A stretch of DNA of 63,158 bases, the filler included, from Hausera hauseri (taxonomy: Eukaryota): the NCBI GenBank assembly GCA_046269625.1. It is 11 parts of 11 records of this genome, joined end to end, with 100 filler letters (N's around TTAATTAATTAA, not from the genome) between each part and the next. Parts side by side here need not be neighbours in the genome. Positions count along the whole stretch, not along the records: positions 14,759 to 23,327 come from JBJURY010594333.1; 10 more parts are not named here. The stretch is one strand, 5' to 3'. The notes beneath the pieces were generated by a model. It was not told where the DNA came from. It searched no databases and worked only from the letters and a program-made list of their open reading frames with translations. A program made the position numbers and the translations under genes. Shown piece after piece: positions 14,659 to 23,427 of the stretch. Positions within the stretch are counted from its first letter, which is position 1. Every line of letters begins with the position of its first letter.

Positions 14659-14847
14659 NNNNNNNNNNNNNNNNNNNNNNNNNNNNNNNNNNNNNNNNNN
14701 NNTTAATTAATTAANNNNNNNNNNNNNNNNNNNNNNNNNNNNNNNNNNNNNNNNNNNNATATCGCGAAGAATCTATTATTATCGTTATATAGCGCCAGAC
14801 CTATATTAATAATTATAACGCGACAGACAGTTGGACAAAATAATATC

Positions 14848-17800
14848 ATGAAAAATAATCAACTGTTTGTTGAGAACTGCTCCCCGAAAAATAAATATAA
14901 AAATAAAGATTTAGAAAATTGGTTATCTTTACAAAGAAATAAAGTACCGTATCAACAAAATATTCTATTGGATTATAATAAATTATGTTCAAAAGAAAGA
15001 GATTGCTGGATAAATGACCGCTATTTAAAATTTAGGATAGATAAGGTCATCGAATACATCACCCTTTATAAAGGAAATGCCGTAGAAAATCTTAACGACA
15101 TTCATGAAGTGATTACTCTTTTCAAAGCAAACAAATTACAAATTGATGATAATCAAACAGTCATAAGAAAACCACATAGAAAAATTACCCGAGGTAGGAA
15201 AAAAGAAAACGGGCAAAAATTACAGAATAATAATCCAAATGACATGGAAATTGGAGATCTGAAAGAAATTGAAACTATAATAGATGATGTTATAAGTTGT
15301 AGTGATAGGTATAATAAAGAAAAGAAAAATGAGAAGGAAGAAGAGAAGACAACAAAAACCGTAAAACGAGAATTGAAACAAATTATTGTTAAAATAAACC
15401 AAAATTCACAAATTGTTATCGAGGTTGGAAAGATAAAAACTATCGCCATGTTGCTAAGGGAGATAGTAGCGAGACATCACATAAAGATAAAGAGCCACAT
15501 GATCATTTACAATGGTAAAAACTGGAAAAGCGAAGATATTATAGAAGAGATCCCTCACGGAGCAACAATCAACGTCATTTGCGGATTGAAAGGTGGGAGT
15601 TCTAACGAGAGTGAAGAATTCGAAAATCGATTACTGGCCAAGGATGAATTAAGATGTGAATTGACAGTCCAAAGAAAATCGCTCATAAACAGTCGATTAA
15701 CGGAGGACGAATTCCAATATCAAAGTAATAGATACGATGAACTTTTTAAGAAATTATCCATGGAGATCAGTACGTTGAAATTAGTTGCCAGAAAATTGAA
15801 AAGAAGAGAAGAATTAGCGGAATTAATCGATGAATCAAAGAACATCGAGATGCAAAATGAAGAAATAATAAGGATGATTCAAGCAAAAAATTTTAGAGTT
15901 TTAGAAGACAAATTAGATATAAAAGCTCAGAATAATTATTTAGCACCTAAGTTAAAAAGGGTGGAACTTCCAAAATTCGGGGGTAATGTTGCCGAATTTG
16001 AAAAATGGCGACAGATATTTAGAACGTGTGTGGATAATACTTCACTTTCCAGCATAGACAAACAGATTCAACTAGAGAACTGTTTATACGGTGAGGCGAA
16101 AAGACTAATTCAAAGCTATGATCTTTCTGAAAACTCTTATAAAGCGGCACTCGAAAAGTTGGAACGTTATTACGGAGGGAATCAGAGAAACTATGCTTCC
16201 CTCATGTCGGAAATTATGGAGTTTCCAAAAATCGGCGTACACAATATTAAAGATTTAGATGCCTTTGCTACATTATTAGATTCAGTCATTGTGAGATTAA
16301 AACATCTAGACCGAGAAATAGAGTTAGAAGGCGGATTGTTATACCAAAATTTAATCCAAAAACTACCTGAGATAATGGTATTGACATGGGAGAGGTATCG
16401 AGAAGATAAAGATAAGAAACGTAATGTACAAGAATTAAAAATATGGGTGGAAAAAGAGGCTGAATTGAAACGGATCGCTGCCGAAGGTGTTCACGGAATA
16501 AATGTTCTAATGCCAAATAAAATCAGAAATCCAGAACGACAAGTTAAAGGTTCATTCTTCACAAATAAAAAGCAAGGTATAGAAAAGTTAACGTACAAGA
16601 TTGGGAATGATGTTGAAAATAAGAGAAATGAAGAAAATAATAATCATTGGAATAAAAATAGAAGATTGTTAAATACTTGTAAATATTTTTTAAACGGTAA
16701 TTGCAAATTTGGTGATTCATGCAAGTTTAGTCATGAAATAAAGGATCCAAACAGTAATACGAATGTAAATCAAAAATATTGTGTTTATTTTCTAAATGGA
16801 AACTGTAAATATGGAAAAGGTTGCCGATTCAAACATGTAAATCCTTCAAANNNNNNNNNNNNNNNNNNNNNNNNNNNNNNNNNNNNNNNNNNNNNNNNNN
16901 NNNNNNNNNNNNNNNNNNNNNNNNNNNNNNNNNNNNNNNNNNNNNNNNNNAAATATTGTGTTTATTTTCTAAATGGAAACTGTAAATATGGAAAAGGTTG
17001 CCGATTCAAACATGTAAATCCTTCAAAAATATCAAAACGAGATAACAATTATTCAAAAAAATTCGATAAAAAAGTAGATATAAAAAATTTATCTGAAGCT
17101 CTCATTAAAGTTGACAATACAAAATCAGAACTAAATGATAACTCTTGTCAAACGTATAGTGATGGCTATTCAGAGAAACATTCGTATATGACGAACATGA
17201 AAAAAGAAAGGTCTAAAGGATCAGATAAAATAGCTCTAAGGACCGTCTCAGTGTATCTGATTAGTAGAAAAAAGAAGATCAAAGTGAACATGTTACTAGA
17301 CGATGCCAGCACGGACAGTTTTCTTGAAGAAGACATTGTCCAATCGTTAGAACTAAGTGGAAAAGTAGAAGATGTTACGGTGGCAGTAGTGGGAGGAACA
17401 CAAAAAAGACAAAAGGTGACCAGAGTTTGCATGACCTTACAAAGTTTAGATGGTAACGTTTGTGAGAAATTTGACGCGTTATCCATGAGAAGACCAACAG
17501 GGTCCATGAAAGCTATTAATTGGGCGGTAAAAAAAAGACAATGGCCATACTTACGAGACATTGAATTTGTGGGAACAGGACAAGGAGAACGTGTAGACGG
17601 AATTATAGGAGCCAATTACATACACCTCCACAAATCTATAAGGGAAGTCTCAGGAAAACGAGGAGAACCAGTGGCTCGACTGACTCCTCTTGGATGGACT
17701 TGTGTCGGAATCCTAAACGAAGGAGAAGATAATTTAATACGAAACAGTCTGGTAAGAACGTATTGGACGAGAGTTGATGAAGTAAATGAAGATATAAAAA

Positions 17801-20800
17801 GATTATGGGAGATAGAAAATTCGGTTGAAGAAAAAGAAAGTTGGTCGCATTTAGATAAAGAAATTCTTCGAGTCGCAAAAGACAAGATGAAGAAAACCGA
17901 AGATGGTAGGTACGAGGTTTCTCTGCCTTGGAAAACAGAAACGGAAAAAATACCAAATTCCAGAAATATGGCTGAAAAAAGGCTAGAATATTTAGAAAAG
18001 AAACTAAAATCAGACAAATCTGTAAAAGTAGCTTACGAACAAGTGATTGAAGATCACATAAAGAAAGGGTATGTGGAGCAAGTGGAAAGAGAAGAAAAGG
18101 GAGCTGATTATTGGATGTTACCGCACTTCCCAGTTGTGAAACCGGATAGATCTACCACAAAAATTAGAATTGTCTTTGATGCAGCAGCAAAAGTAAAAGG
18201 AACAAGTCTAAACGGATTGCTGCATTCGGGACCAAAATTGCAATTGGATTTAGTAGACATCCTGATACGAATGAGAAAAAATGAGATAGTTCTGATTTGT
18301 GACATAGCTGAAATGTTCCTGCAAATCAGCGTTTCACCTAATGACAGAAAATTCCTACAATTTCTGTGGAGAAGAAATGGTGAGATCGAAACATATCAAT
18401 TCACAAGGCTTGTATTTGGACTGAATGCCTCACCGTTCCTAGCACAACTTGTAAGTCAAGCGAATGCAGAATTGTTTGAAGAAAAGTACCCACGGGCGGT
18501 CGAAACGATTAAACAATCAACGTACATGGATGATTGCATAGATTCTGTCGAGACAGAAGATGAGGCTGTAAAGTTATACTATCAGTTGAAAGAGATATGG
18601 GGAACAGCGAAAATGAAGACACATAAATGGTTATCGAATTCAGAGCGATTATATCGCGAGATACCGGATAATGAAAGAGCAAAGGAATACGCTTTCAAAA
18701 GCGAAGTCAATTGCACCTCAAAAACTCTAGGACTTAAATGGGATGTCAAAGAAGACTGTTTGACTTTCGACGGAGGGGGGAGCCATGAAAGTGGATTGAC
18801 TAAAAGAAACGTGCTAAGTGCCTTGGCAAAAATATTTGACCCTCTAGGTCTAGTGAGTACCGTTACCATAGTAGGCAAATGTTTATTACAGGAAATGTGG
18901 TTGAATGGGATTGATTGGGATCAAATGATTCCTGAAGAACTAAGAAAACGTACTACAACATGGTTGAAACAACTATCCGAGTTAGATAAAGTAAAGACAA
19001 AGAGATGGTTAGGAATAAATAATATCAATGATAAGGAGATCCATGTATTTTGTGACGCATCTAGTATAGCTTATGGAGCGGTAGCTTACATTAGATGTGA
19101 AGATAACGGAGAGATACTAACGAATATAATTGCAGCGAAATCAAAAGTTGCTCCTATAAAATCTATATCAATTCCCAGATTGGAGCTGATGGCGGCATGT
19201 ATAGGAGTGAAGCTATGCATGAAGGTATCGAAAGTTCTACAAATAACAAATGAAAAAGTAACATACTGGAGTGATAGCATGAATGTCCTCTGTTGGGTCA
19301 AACAATACTCAAAATACTATAAACCATTTGTAGCGAACAGAATAGGTTTCATTCAGGAGAGAAGTGAAGGATCAAAATGGAAATATATTAACACCAAACA
19401 AAACCCAGCGGACTATCTCTCTCGAGGAACCACTGTGGAAGAAGTTATAAAACTGAATTTATGGTGGGAAGGACCTGCGTTTCTGAAATTAAAAGAAAAG
19501 ACCTGGCCAGAACAACCAAAAATCTTAGAAGAAACGGAGATGAAGGAGAAGAAAGTCATAAAAACGTTTTCAACTCAAACGTATGAAAACGTAAATACTA
19601 CATTAACAAACATTAAAGGTGATTCAGAATGGATTAAATATGTTGATGAACAGATACTAAAAGAAAATAATAAAGAATTATCGAGAGAAGATGTTATTAT
19701 AAACATTATAAAAGGTGAACAAGAAGAACACTTCAAAGAAGAAATTGGTCAATTAAAAAGTGGAAAGGAGGTGAGAAAAAATAGTAAAATTCAACAGGCT
19801 AACCCTATGTTGGATGATAACGGAATAATAAGGAGTAATAGTCGATTGTCATTAATAAGGTATCTTGATTGGTCCATCAAATATCCGATAATATTATCGG
19901 ATAAAATGAAAATTACTAAGTGGTTGATAGAACATTGTCACATACAACATAAGCATTGCGCTGGAATTAACCACATATACGCTATGATGAGTAAAGTTTA
20001 CTGGTGTCCCAAACTTAAAAAATTAATAAAGAAAGTCCAACATGATTGTAAAGTGTGTCGCAAAAACAGTGCTAAGGGAACTCAACAACCAATGGCACCA
20101 TTACCGGAGTTCCGCCTTCAAGAGCCACTTAAAGCGTTTAGCGTTGTGGGAATTGATTTTGCAGGTCCGATTTCGATCAAGAAAGGTAGAGGTGTGTCTA
20201 GAGAAAAGAGATATATATGCCTATTTACATGCTTGAAATGTAGGGCTGTTCATTTAGAATTAGCTGCGGATTTGTCTACAGATTCATTCATACGGGCTTT
20301 TTTAAGATTTATGAACCGTCGAGGAAAGCCGAACATCATATTGAGCGACAATGGGACAAACTTTGTAGGGGCAAACAAAGAGGTTTGTGAAATAAGAATC
20401 GACACGTATGCCGTCAAACAGCAATTAGAAAAAGATGAAATTAGATGGATATTTAACCCACCAGGAACACCACATTTTGGAGGAGTATTCGAAATCATGA
20501 TAAAGGCCACAAAGAAGGCTATGTACAAGATACTAGGAAGTGCCAATACAACAGAGGAAGAATTGTTAACAATATTAATCATTGTAGAAGGTATCATCAA
20601 CTCAAGACCCATCACTAGCACAGTAACTGATTCAAAAGACGATATTATATTGTCTCCAAATCACTTTATCATACCTGGCTATGATGGAAAAATTAACGCT
20701 GAGATTAACGGCACCAGAGAAAGTTCTTATGTCGCACGCTGGCGATATATACAAAAACTGTCAAATGATTATTGGACAAGGTGGAGAGAAGAAATAATAA

Positions 20801-21033
20801 TCGGGTACAGAAACCAACATAAGAAATATGAAACGGTGACAAAATTTAATATTGGAGATAAAGTTTGGTTACTAGAAGATAACTTAATGAGAAATCAATG
20901 GCAAATTGGGACCATCAGTCAAATATATCCAGGAAAGGACGGCATTACCAGAATTGTAGATATTGATATCGATGGAAAGATAATCATCCGACCAGTAAAA
21001 AAGATTTGTAAGGTCGAGAGAGATATATGTTAA
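14848..21033 (+). CDS. BEL/Pao LTR retrotransposon single-ORF polyprotein: leader - ubiquitin-like domain - Gag - CCCH fingers - protease - RT - RNase H - integrase
   Basis: 2061 codons with no stop (one 100-N gap). Gag LKRVELPKFGG..W..F; protease LLDDASTDSF; ARLTPLGW; RT LPHFPVVK..RIVFDA..YMDD; RNase H IHVFCDAS..IPRLEL; integrase H..H..CKVC, GIDFAGP, SDNGTNF, GGVFE. Confidence 0.97.
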   Translation: MKNNQLFVENCSPKNKYKNKDLENWLSLQRNKVPYQQNILLDYNKLCSKERDCWINDRYLKFRIDKVIEYITLYKGNAVENLNDIHEVITLFKANKLQIDDNQTVIRKPHRKITRGRKKENGQKLQNNNPNDMEIGDLKEIETIIDDVISCSDRYNKEKKNEKEEEKTTKTVKRELKQIIVKINQNSQIVIEVGKIKTIAMLLREIVARHHIKIKSHMIIYNGKNWKSEDIIEEIPHGATINVICGLKGGSSNESEEFENRLLAKDELRCELTVQRKSLINSRLTEDEFQYQSNRYDELFKKLSMEISTLKLVARKLKRREELAELIDESKNIEMQNEEIIRMIQAKNFRVLEDKLDIKAQNNYLAPKLKRVELPKFGGNVAEFEKWRQIFRTCVDNTSLSSIDKQIQLENCLYGEAKRLIQSYDLSENSYKAALEKLERYYGGNQRNYASLMSEIMEFPKIGVHNIKDLDAFATLLDSVIVRLKHLDREIELEGGLLYQNLIQKLPEIMVLTWERYREDKDKKRNVQELKIWVEKEAELKRIAAEGVHGINVLMPNKIRNPERQVKGSFFTNKKQGIEKLTYKIGNDVENKRNEENNNHWNKNRRLLNTCKYFLNGNCKFGDSCKFSHEIKDPNSNTNVNQKYCVYFLNGNCKYGKGCRFKHVNPSXXXXXXXXXXXXXXXXXXXXXXXXXXXXXXXXXXKYCVYFLNGNCKYGKGCRFKHVNPSKISKRDNNYSKKFDKKVDIKNLSEALIKVDNTKSELNDNSCQTYSDGYSEKHSYMTNMKKERSKGSDKIALRTVSVYLISRKKKIKVNMLLDDASTDSFLEEDIVQSLELSGKVEDVTVAVVGGTQKRQKVTRVCMTLQSLDGNVCEKFDALSMRRPTGSMKAINWAVKKRQWPYLRDIEFVGTGQGERVDGIIGANYIHLHKSIREVSGKRGEPVARLTPLGWTCVGILNEGEDNLIRNSLVRTYWTRVDEVNEDIKRLWEIENSVEEKESWSHLDKEILRVAKDKMKKTEDGRYEVSLPWKTETEKIPNSRNMAEKRLEYLEKKLKSDKSVKVAYEQVIEDHIKKGYVEQVEREEKGADYWMLPHFPVVKPDRSTTKIRIVFDAAAKVKGTSLNGLLHSGPKLQLDLVDILIRMRKNEIVLICDIAEMFLQISVSPNDRKFLQFLWRRNGEIETYQFTRLVFGLNASPFLAQLVSQANAELFEEKYPRAVETIKQSTYMDDCIDSVETEDEAVKLYYQLKEIWGTAKMKTHKWLSNSERLYREIPDNERAKEYAFKSEVNCTSKTLGLKWDVKEDCLTFDGGGSHESGLTKRNVLSALAKIFDPLGLVSTVTIVGKCLLQEMWLNGIDWDQMIPEELRKRTTTWLKQLSELDKVKTKRWLGINNINDKEIHVFCDASSIAYGAVAYIRCEDNGEILTNIIAAKSKVAPIKSISIPRLELMAACIGVKLCMKVSKVLQITNEKVTYWSDSMNVLCWVKQYSKYYKPFVANRIGFIQERSEGSKWKYINTKQNPADYLSRGTTVEEVIKLNLWWEGPAFLKLKEKTWPEQPKILEETEMKEKKVIKTFSTQTYENVNTTLTNIKGDSEWIKYVDEQILKENNKELSREDVIINIIKGEQEEHFKEEIGQLKSGKEVRKNSKIQQANPMLDDNGIIRSNSRLSLIRYLDWSIKYPIILSDKMKITKWLIEHCHIQHKHCAGINHIYAMMSKVYWCPKLKKLIKKVQHDCKVCRKNSAKGTQQPMAPLPEFRLQEPLKAFSVVGIDFAGPISIKKGRGVSREKRYICLFTCLKCRAVHLELAADLSTDSFIRAFLRFMNRRGKPNIILSDNGTNFVGANKEVCEIRIDTYAVKQQLEKDEIRWIFNPPGTPHFGGVFEIMIKATKKAMYKILGSANTTEEELLTILIIVEGIINSRPITSTVTDSKDDIILSPNHFIIPGYDGKINAEINGTRESSYVARWRYIQKLSNDYWTRWREEIIIGYRNQHKKYETVTKFNIGDKVWLLEDNLMRNQWQIGTISQIYPGKDGITRIVDIDIDGKIIIRPVKKICKVERDIC
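15376..15597 (+). other. Ubiquitin-like domain within the BEL polyprotein (aa 177-250)
   Basis: KQIIVK..IVIEV..TIAMLLREI..IIYNGK..ATINVICGLKGG aligns to ubiquitin by eye with one 2-residue gap and about 19 identities, ending in di-glycine. Confidence 0.85.
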
Positions 21034-21726
21034 AATTGATGATAATTAAGATAAATCTATATAAATATATATAATAAGTAAATATAGGGTTATATAGTTT
21101 GTAAATCATGATTAACTGATAATTGTCTTGTTGGTTAAAAGAATCGAGTGAACTAAAATTCTTAATGTGACATAAATATCGTTTCCTCCGAATGTCAGAA
21201 ATCTAAAGAAACTCTAACCTTCCCTTCAACCCTTCACTTAATTCCAACTGAGTAACACCAGCGATTGAAATAGCAGCTTTATTTAAGTTAAAATAAACCT
21301 TTATTTAATAGATCCATATCGGTATTTATTATTGATAAGACCTTAATTATCAACTACATTATCACCTTAAAACGTTAAAACGCCTTCGATTCTTAAATGA
21401 CTCCTTTATCTTGATCGATTCTTGGATTGTTAAAACAGATGACACTTATATGTTCTTTATTGCATTGGGAGATTTATACAGTCTTATCTTAAATTTCCCA
21501 AAACTCCACAAAAATGAGCCCTGAATCTTATAAAAATTGAGAAACTGATGAATCGCATAATCATTATTCGCTGTCTCGAGTGTCTCTAACCGTTGTTCAA
21601 AGAATTCATCGAATGTTCGCGTAAAAGCAAAAATACCCCCTTTTTTAATTGGTATTAGTTATAAATAAATTTAGCTTGTATATATCTGAGACCTCCTCTT
21701 TAACTGATTGAAGACTGAATAGCTTC

Positions 21727-21950
21727 AAGAAAGGGGGGGGGAAATGTGAACGTTAAAACAGACAACAAATGGGAGAAGCGACGGGGAGTCGAGACAGTGG
21801 ACGGTGGTGTGTGGCGATGTGGGTTATGGGCCGGTTAAACAACAAAAAGGACAGAAACTAATCACCCATATAAGAAATGTTGTCAAAATTTAGCACCTGA
21901 TTACCAAATTAAAAGAAGAGTGAAACTTGTGAATGATAAAGACAATAACA
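21727..21950 (+). repeat. Polypurine tract (21727-21744) and putative 3' LTR of the BEL element
   Basis: AAGAAAGGGGGGGGGAAA is followed immediately by TGTG at 21745, then TATA-like CATATAAG, ATTAAA and a possible ..AACA end at 21950. The 5' LTR is not in the contig, so the right boundary is tentative. Confidence 0.6.
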
Positions 21951-22239
21951 CTTATGAAAATTTTAGACAATTCATGTGATCGAATTTGTACATAAGCCGT
22001 ATGTAAAAAATATTGTTTTAATTGTTGCTAGATTGAGTTTGTAGTATATAGATACGAAATCAGAAATTAGATTCCGCGAAATAAATGATCAATTGTGTTT
22101 CTTTAAAAAATTGTTGTTGTATATATATTCCATAAGAAAATGTATTAAATGGAAATTGATTATAAAGGAAGAAAAATGAATGAAAAAGCTGAAGACGTTG
22201 TTTTGACCAGAACAACGGGAATTTTGTAGATTGAATTAG

Positions 22240-22679
22240 ATAACGGTAATTGATGGGTTTGATGAGAATTGGTCTGAGAAACTACGCAACGGTGACGTTA
22301 TTTTCATCGACGATTTATTTCAGGAAGCCGCGAAACAATCGGACTTCAACAACCTGTTCAAGAAGATTACACAACACCGTGGCGTAACGGTTATTTTCAT
22401 TATACAAAACACGTTTCATCACGGCGGATAGCATCTAACAAGTAATAAAATCGTACTCTTTTTGGTGTTGTTTAAAAATACCCGTGATCAGACTATCATT
22501 GATTATGTTGCACAACAAGTATTTCCACACAAGCGAGACTACTTGATAGATGCATATCATGATGCACGACCGAGCCACACGGATACTTGTTCATTAACTT
22601 TGCACAACAGTGTCCCGATGACATTCGTGTACGAACATATATTTTCAATCAGAAAGTGTATGTGTCTTTAACAAATTAG
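22240..22679 (+). pseudogene. Polinton/Maverick (adintovirus-like) packaging ATPase, C-terminal half, decayed
   Basis: VIFIDDL (Walker B), QHRGVTVIFIIQN, LVLFKNTRD, AYHDA, GYLFINF..PDDIRVRTYIF. One internal stop and one frameshift. Confidence 0.85.
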
Positions 22680-22926
22680 AAAATCGATGACATGATTGTG
22701 ATAAAATGAAGAATTTCCGAAAAACAATTGTTAAACCTAAACCTACTGCCAAGCGGGTGTCCGGCTGCAAGAAGCGTGTATTAAAACGAACCACCTCTAC
22801 AGTCAAGCGATTAATCAATTCTGTGCTTTGAACAACAAAAGCAGCAGCTAGAAGCCAATTACCATCACAGTTGCAACGGTTATAAACAACTACGTTTCAT
22901 CAGCATTAATACGCCCTCAAAAAAGC

Positions 22927-23255
22927 ATGCGATTCAAACGCAGTCAGCCGTACTTTATTGCTTTGCTCAAGACACCTACGAGGCATAAGCGAAACATGCT
23001 GCGATCATTTCCACAGTTTGTAGTAGACGATTTGATGGAAATTTTATACAATATCGTTGTGGATCACGTTGACATTGGTAATGGAAAGCGGAATTTTCTA
23101 AATTATCGAAAACGACTCATTGTTTTGCCAACGCCCGTAGTAAACGACTGAAACGGGAGGTCATGTACCAGCAATATGGCGGATTCCTTGGTACAATTCT
23201 ACCGATTGTCACGCCATTACTGGGTGGACTCATTGGTTCTGCAACAACATCATAG
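22927..23255 (+). pseudogene. Polinton/adintovirus small conserved protein with GG-hydrophobic tail (pX/'gasderminX'-like), frameshifted
   Basis: LMEILYNIV.. then, after a frameshift, KREVMYQQYGGFLGTILPIVTPLLGGLIG. Sits downstream of the ATPase. Confidence 0.7.
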
Positions 23256-23427
23256 TATAAACAATGACGGTAAGTATATGGTGATTCGGCGATATGGGTG
23301 CATGGTTTTCATCTTTCTGTCCCAGTTNNNNNNNNNNNNNNNNNNNNNNNNNNNNNNNNNNNNNNNNNNNNTTAATTAATTAANNNNNNNNNNNNNNNNN
23401 NNNNNNNNNNNNNNNNNNNNNNNNNNN

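Follow-up and report, generated by a model that had tools for sequence, protein, structure and literature searches.

The window analysed here, i.e., a stretch of 63,158 nucleotides (nt), filler included, from the genome of Hausera hauseri (GenBank assembly GCA_046269625.1), contains in its piece from 14759 to 23327 (JBJURY010594333.1) a long terminal repeat (LTR) retrotransposon of the BEL/Pao type. One open reading frame (ORF) on the + strand (14848..21033, 2061 codons) is open throughout except for a gap of Ns and exhibits, in the order of its Pfam families, DUF1759, CCCH fingers, an aspartic protease region, RVT_1, Peptidase_A17, Integrase_H2C2, rve, and DUF5641. From this domain set and order (in particular DUF1759, Peptidase_A17, RVT_1, rve, and DUF5641) and from the grouping of its reverse transcriptase (RT), the element is identified as a member of BEL/Pao. 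In front of Gag, ORF residues 177-250 (15376..15597, + strand) constitute a diverged ubiquitin-like domain (UBL), which ends in L247-K248-G249-G250 (15586..15597, + strand) and continues with S-S-N-E-S-E-E. This domain is the main subject of the present report: its L-x-G-G end is proposed to be a site at which host deubiquitinating enzymes (DUBs) cut the polyprotein, such that Ser251 would become an N-terminus.

The original prediction, made from this DNA alone, had described such a domain between a leader and Gag in an otherwise intact ORF. The domain at residues 177-250 with its LKGG end and the following SSNESEE is borne out by profile, structure database, and modelling comparisons given below, and its order relative to Gag is right, with DUF1759 beginning at residue 377, i.e., 127 residues past the GG. 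The frame is open as stated, but the ORF is interrupted by an assembly gap of 100 Ns (16851..16950), which has an identical copy of 77 nt on either side (16774-16850 and 16951-17027). The copies are spaced by 177 nt, a multiple of three, so that the frame is maintained across the gap.

Compared with the Pfam ubiquitin profile (PF00240), the UBL reaches 16.8 bits (E 0.0059) over profile positions 1-67 of 72. The six PDB sequence matches at E<10 are all ubiquitin, viral ubiquitin, ISG15 or OAS-UBL, and align from 2-74 to 2-76 with GG placed over GG. A hidden Markov model (HMM) was built from the ubiquitin domains present in seven polyproteins of related BEL/Pao elements, with the Hausera sequence excluded. 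It finds residues 178-250 over profile positions 2-76 with 25.6 bits (E 4.3e-10, single target), whereas its scores in about 110 other polyproteins of the BEL/Pao type do not exceed 2.7 bits. A phmmer search of the UBL against the 120 closest relatives gave no match, nor did the segment from UBL to Gag in JGI metagenome contigs or residues 251-667 in a word-index search, and the ESM Atlas returned only DUF1759 clusters for UBL and Gag. The profile and PDB comparisons indicate that the UBL is homologous to bona fide ubiquitin domains via intermediates.

The AlphaFold2 model of the UBL exhibits the beta-grasp order beta-beta-alpha-beta-beta-(3-10)-beta, with a tail that is disordered from L247 onwards; hydrophobic core positions and the L-x-G-G are intact in the sequence. 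The mean predicted local distance difference test score is 64 for the single sequence and 73.5 with a 10-row alignment (76-86 in the core). When both models were compared with the PDB by Foldseek, the top matches were all ubiquitin, NEDD8 or SUMO, and the model from the 10-row alignment gave template modelling (TM) scores of 0.76-0.81, root mean square deviations of 2.1-2.6 Å, and an E of 2e-5. The alignment behind this latter model includes ubiquitin-like relatives, such that the model is not independent of the homology argument. The beta-grasp fold implied by the original prediction was thus recovered by AlphaFold2 as well as by Foldseek, and the UBL is predicted to adopt it.

Relatives of the element were collected with the RT region (residues 1050-1500) as query, which yielded 2118 BEL/Pao proteins at E<=1e-20. 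The best 120 of these all possess PF05380, and the RT shares 43-52% identity with BEL/Pao elements from molluscs, cnidarians, echinoderms and a sponge. Pfam ubiquitin is found above cut-off in seven of the best 120 (36-112 bits in rescans), in which it is situated 128-153 residues upstream of DUF1759, compared with the 127 residues in Hausera. In an RT tree of 121 sequences, these seven carriers form, together with the relatives P0005, P0008, and P0024, one clade of ten (SH-aLRT 95). The ORF calls of P0005 and P0008 open inside the UBL tail (...L-S-L-K-G-G and M-L-I-G-L-K-G-G, respectively), P0024 is a fragment devoid of Gag, and the UBL module is present in every clade member that can be assessed. 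Outside the clade it occurs in 0 of 110 proteins, and none of the 120 closest relatives has a PHD family in its Pfam list. Judged from sequence, the UBL before Gag is a trait of one BEL/Pao lineage.

Within the set, pairwise identity of the UBLs ranges from 16 to 59%, and the only invariant columns of the alignment are the L, G, and G that correspond to ubiquitin positions 73, 75, and 76 (10/10 UBLs). Across the ten, position 72 is occupied by G, R, G, R, R, K, Q, G, S, and G (G in Hausera) and position 74 by K, L, L, F, Q, R, F, Q, K, and K; the positions of the Ile44 patch (including 8, 44, and 68) and the lysines are variable as well. In the Hausera UBL, L8 is changed to N, H68 to N, R72 to G, and R74 to K, and K48 is kept. 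Variable surfaces combined with an invariant LxGG suggest that selection keeps the ubiquitin fold plus the tail, not the signalling surfaces. The GG to which the original prediction drew attention is conserved, as part of the invariant L-x-G-G, across nine related elements (about 50% RT identity), which are not genomic copies of the Hausera element. Immediately past the GG stands S (three UBLs), M (four), G (two), or Q (one), but Pro in none of them. Most members then continue with an acidic run and a common basic segment, P0012 and P0036 being the exceptions. Accordingly, the Gag N-terminal region of the Hausera element (15598..15975, + strand) consists, in alignment with the post-GG segments of the relatives, of an acidic stretch and then a basic/helical segment, sharing with them a basic run and an L-T motif.

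Concerning the part upstream of the UBL, the reading frame of the leader (14761..15375, + strand; first ATG at 14848) is stop-free from the 5' edge of the piece onwards: its 205 codons include 0 stops where composition predicts 18.8, none of 20000 shuffles was stop-free, and the remaining five frames of the leader region have 7-32 stops. As the frame is open to the 5' edge (14761), the true start is either 14848 or a position further upstream, and the 176 residues of the leader are a minimum. No Pfam family is found in the leader, and no homologue of it was found with residues 1-300 as query among 1.84 billion representative proteins or in a word-index search; in the ESM Atlas it gave low recognition and no lead. 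The description of the leader as 176 unknown residues thus stands as regards the missing homologues, but not as regards its length. An antisense ORF of 98 codons at the junction of leader and UBL (15153-15449, minus strand) has no Pfam family and probably exists by chance.

An all-against-all BLASTP comparison of the leaders in the clade gave no significant match, and a G-S-R-A-W peptide common to the leaders of P0007 and P0036 is a translated primer-binding site (PBS). Nevertheless, at least 69 open codons precede the UBL in all eight elements with a complete UBL, which indicates that the frames before the UBL are kept open although the leader sequences are not conserved. The DNA of one relative was read, namely the contig of P0036 (L001), which possesses LTR ends, a PBS, and a polypurine tract. 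Its 5' LTR part ends with ...CCGCAACA, mirroring the TGTTGCGG with which the 3' LTR begins behind the polypurine tract, and two bases past the LTR end follows the PBS-like TGGTAGCAGAGCG (positions 409-421), which we take to be complementary to the 3' end of the metazoan initiator tRNA-Met. The frame of the ORF runs without stop through the 5' LTR part and the PBS up to the UBL, whose own Met is at 850, about 430 nt beyond the PBS. Between PBS and UBL there are 0 stops in 147 codons compared with 9.8 expected, and 1 of 20000 shuffles was stop-free. L001 also contains tandem repeats, with a 30-nt repeat within the 5' LTR part and a 54-nt repeat at 574-735. In three relatives the leader includes host-type domains: a kinesin motor together with a Sec23 trunk and beta-sandwich in P0003 (residues 17-506, E down to 6e-68), a TRAF-type zinc finger in P0012 (residues 202-256), and a piece of HSP90 in P0051 (residues 22-62). 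These are seen at the protein level only and may be artefacts of gene models or assembly.

The origin of the domain may be traced in P0017, residues 124-225 of which align over a head-to-tail polyubiquitin junction, i.e., the last 25 residues of one unit plus a full unit. This unit junction indicates a polyubiquitin transcript as source, and it points to an ancestor of the BEL/Pao lineage that took the domain from host polyubiquitin mRNA. In P0017 and in P0012 (unit at residues 636-710), the N-terminal two thirds are about 87-90% identical to ubiquitin, as read from printed alignments, and the last 22-35 residues are far more diverged; P0030 and P0036, the sisters of P0017 and P0012, are diverged along the whole UBL. 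The mosaic of P0017 and P0012 suggests a later exchange with host ubiquitin mRNA inside the already resident domain.

Taken together, it is proposed with moderate confidence that host DUBs cut after the GG, drop the upstream product, and set the N-terminus of Gag. Translation would start in the variable 5' leader, which is unconserved yet kept in frame. The host enzymes that process natural ubiquitin-fusion precursors would then cut after the invariant L-x-G-G, and this cut would remove leader and UBL and leave Gag-Pol with a defined N-terminus (Ser251 in Hausera) just before the conserved acidic/basic helix. DUBs cut fusions of ubiquitin to a following residue X, as in polyubiquitin, UBA52, and RPS27A, provided that X is not Pro, and UBL domains that are not processed generally lack a terminal GG. 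The invariance of LxGG in 10/10 UBLs favours a selected processing site, for which a host deubiquitinase is the obvious candidate, and no domain of a DUB or of a ubiquitin-like protein protease (ULP) was found in the element by the Pfam scan; the lack of an own DUB/ULP, the invariant tail, and the avoidance of Pro after the GG all support cleavage by host DUBs. The original prediction that a host protease releases Gag-Pol at Ser is thereby upheld in part, the cleavage itself being what we infer from these features.

Several observations weigh against this reading. No UBL of the set has diverged further than that of Hausera, which shares 22-31% identity with the others and does not reach the Pfam gathering cut-off of 25.4 bits for PF00240, and the element joins the UBL clade in the best tree with weak support (71.6). 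Many USP and UCH enzymes contact the ubiquitin surface residues L8, H68, R72, and R74; all four are changed in the Hausera UBL, and efficient recognition by DUBs is thus not assured. A single copy from the Hausera hauseri genome was examined, and its true start codon, 5' LTR, and transcription start fall outside the piece. In L001, out-of-frame ATGs are situated between PBS and UBL, such that the translation start is ambiguous. Finally, both the cleavage after the GG and the identity of the enzyme are what we infer.

Alternatively, the UBL might stay attached and act as a domain of the Gag precursor, the GG being an inherited remnant. It could then recruit ubiquitin-binding machinery, such as budding or sorting factors of the ESCRT type or proteasome shuttles, or aid folding and solubility. 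The fold is conserved across the clade as such a function would have it, ubiquitin fused to retroviral Gag can replace a late domain, and ubiquitin moieties increase the yield of the ribosomal proteins to which they are fused. However, the positions used by ubiquitin-binding domains (L8, I44, H68, V70) are not conserved, the only invariant part is precisely the L-x-G-G, for which a domain that stays uncut has no need, and the ubiquitin fusion degradation (UFD) pathway breaks down ubiquitin fusions that escape cleavage, which makes a permanently attached UBL unlikely. That the UBL of the Hausera copy is instead a decaying passenger, whose open frame and GG merely reflect a young insertion while its ancestors used the domain, would agree with its being the most diverged of the set and below the Pfam cut-off. 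Yet its hydrophobic core positions and L-x-G-G have remained intact, the whole frame of 2061 codons is open save for the N gap, and a neutral segment at about 30% GC would soon gain stops, of which the other frames across the UBL carry 10 and 2; decay is therefore regarded as improbable.

Cleavage, if it occurs, yields a free GG end, and the original prediction had accordingly suggested that the freed leader-UBL might be a functional product, either conjugated as a modifier or acting as a decoy for host ubiquitin/UBL enzymes. The retention of K48 in the Hausera UBL would fit. Ubiquitin Arg72 is, however, required for E1 activation; position 72 is G in the Hausera UBL, which thus lacks this Arg72-type feature of a conjugatable type I UBL, and it is variable in the clade, as are positions 74, 8, 44, and 68 and the lysines. 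The leaders are moreover unrelated to each other, and part of one of them is translated LTR and PBS. With Arg72 not conserved and the leaders not homologous, conjugation of the freed UBL is disfavoured and this suggestion is judged quite improbable. The element also encodes an aspartic protease of its own with the usual motif; as Gag processing by retroelement proteases occurs, the junction could be cut by this enzyme, with the UBL as a mere spacer. Retropepsin sites are hydrophobic, not G-G/S, and such a cut leaves the ubiquitin fold and the LxGG in ten elements with differing flanks unexplained, so that this explanation appears very improbable indeed.

Polyprotein processing in LTR retrotransposons and retroviruses is generally attributed to their own aspartic protease. 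If host deubiquitinases do cut after the GG, the lineage has arrived at a different solution, in that it has outsourced a maturation step to them and has fixed host ubiquitin as a cis-acting cut site, for which the closest precedent, in pestiviruses, is sporadic and pathogenic. The clade would then also constitute a natural experiment on the minimal ubiquitin features needed by host DUBs, and the module may explain the tolerance of long unrelated 5' coding leaders, some with host-gene fragments. A bolder extension, which we put forward only tentatively and consider rather doubtful, is that the ubiquitin-GG module serves as an 'N-terminal reset': as host DUBs would cut the module off, anything translated upstream would be tolerated, and the leader would be a landing pad for host mRNA fragments, i.e., a cargo slot. 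Cargo in the leader would in this case be produced in the same quantity as Gag-Pol and set free as polypeptides of its own, and the kinesin and Sec23 parts in P0003, the TRAF-type finger in P0012, and the HSP90 piece in P0051 would be examples of captured cargo. For annotation, 'ubiquitin' matches within the ORFs of BEL/Pao elements are best left unmasked and should not be assigned to separate host genes.

Among known systems, the ubiquitin insertions of pestiviruses can be regarded as the closest functional analogue, and cellular ubiquitin-fusion precursors as the closest structural one. In cytopathic pestiviruses (bovine viral diarrhoea virus, BVDV), such insertions are cut by host ubiquitin C-terminal hydrolases, which frees NS3. 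Common to both cases is host ubiquitin captured by RNA recombination and placed directly before a protein that needs a free N-terminus, with a cut after the GG by host enzymes, which for the BEL/Pao element is proposed. In pestiviruses the insertions arose recently and sporadically, have almost the sequence of ubiquitin, and are associated with a disease phenotype, whereas the BEL/Pao UBL is old, diverged, and fixed in a whole retrotransposon clade, at the front of Gag. With the cellular precursors (polyubiquitin, UBA52, RPS27A, FAU), the element shares the succession of a ubiquitin or UBL, the GG, and a partner whose first residue is not Pro, and P0017 even retains the junction of polyubiquitin units. 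In contrast to them, the Hausera UBL is internal, following a translated leader of at least 176 residues, and shares only about 25% identity with ubiquitin, R72 and R74 having been replaced. Some non-LTR retrotransposon ORFs possess at their N-terminus 2A 'StopGo' peptides, which act by ribosomal skipping and need neither a protease nor a fold. They are likewise a short device, independent of the host or assisted by it, that parts an upstream translated segment from a retroelement protein, whereas the BEL/Pao UBL would use a folded host-derived domain and a host protease.

The order of DUF1759 Gag, protease, RT, Pao-specific region, integrase, and DUF5641 is that of BEL/Pao elements (Belpaoviridae, PMC3118150), from which the Hausera element differs by the ubiquitin domain upstream of Gag; the word 'ubiquitin' is absent from that survey. 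Host-derived domains such as MATH/TRAF are described in LTR-retrotransposon polyproteins for the giant Gypsy-like Burro elements of planarians (PMC6431247), a likeness to the TRAF-type zinc finger in the leader of P0012; Burro elements belong to another superfamily, however, and no ubiquitin-GG module is reported for them (PMC6431247). Full-text literature searches outside Repbase reports and subscription journals did not find ubiquitin upstream of Gag in BEL/Pao or other LTR retrotransposons, and it may have been mentioned earlier in those two kinds of source.

Concerning the remaining parts of the element, the capsid-like DUF1759 domain of Gag (PF03564, E 1.1e-17) comprises residues 377-521 (15976..16410, + strand). 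The aspartic protease region (17173..17622, + strand) contains an L-L-D-D-A-S motif at residues 816-821. A protease defect, considered because of D-D-A-S instead of D-[ST]-G, was rejected, as no other form of the motif is as frequent among the relatives as D-D-A-S, which occurs in 59 of 114 aligned rows. RVT_1 (E 1.1e-10) and the Pao-specific Peptidase_A17 region (E 1.5e-16 and 1.2e-26) follow at 18247..19278 (+ strand), and the integrase with H2C2 zinc domain, rve core, and DUF5641 (E 1.3e-4, 8.5e-7, and 1.6e-20, respectively) at 19915..21012 (+ strand). ORFs downstream of the stop codon contain no Pfam family, and no Rfam family was found. The stop codon is followed by about 700 nt of AT-rich non-coding DNA up to a polypurine-like run (window 21034-21752). 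This run (21727-21744), read directly from the sequence, continues with TGTGAACG (together 21727..21752, + strand), which begins with TGT and is possibly the start of a 3' LTR, with no matching 5' LTR in the piece. Neither a 5' LTR nor a PBS is present within 14759-23327, and a PBS of the tRNA-iMet type as in L001 is absent from the window.

At the nucleocapsid position, zinc fingers of the CCCH type (C-x8-C-x5-C-x3-H) are located at residues 611, 645, and 704 (16678..17013, + strand; Pfam zf-CCCH families, E 1e-11, and a regular expression scan). They are arranged in tandem and are of the TIS11/ZAP type. The third one (residue 704) is the duplicate on the far side of the N gap: each of the 77-nt copies around the gap encodes one finger (window 16774-17027), such that the assembly is compatible with either two or three fingers. 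The ten clade relatives of the element possess two CCHC knuckles at this position, and among the 120 proteins a CCCH pattern upstream of the protease is otherwise found only in P0019 and P0045 (oyster). The presence of CCCH in place of CCHC looks like an exchange of the RNA-binding module.

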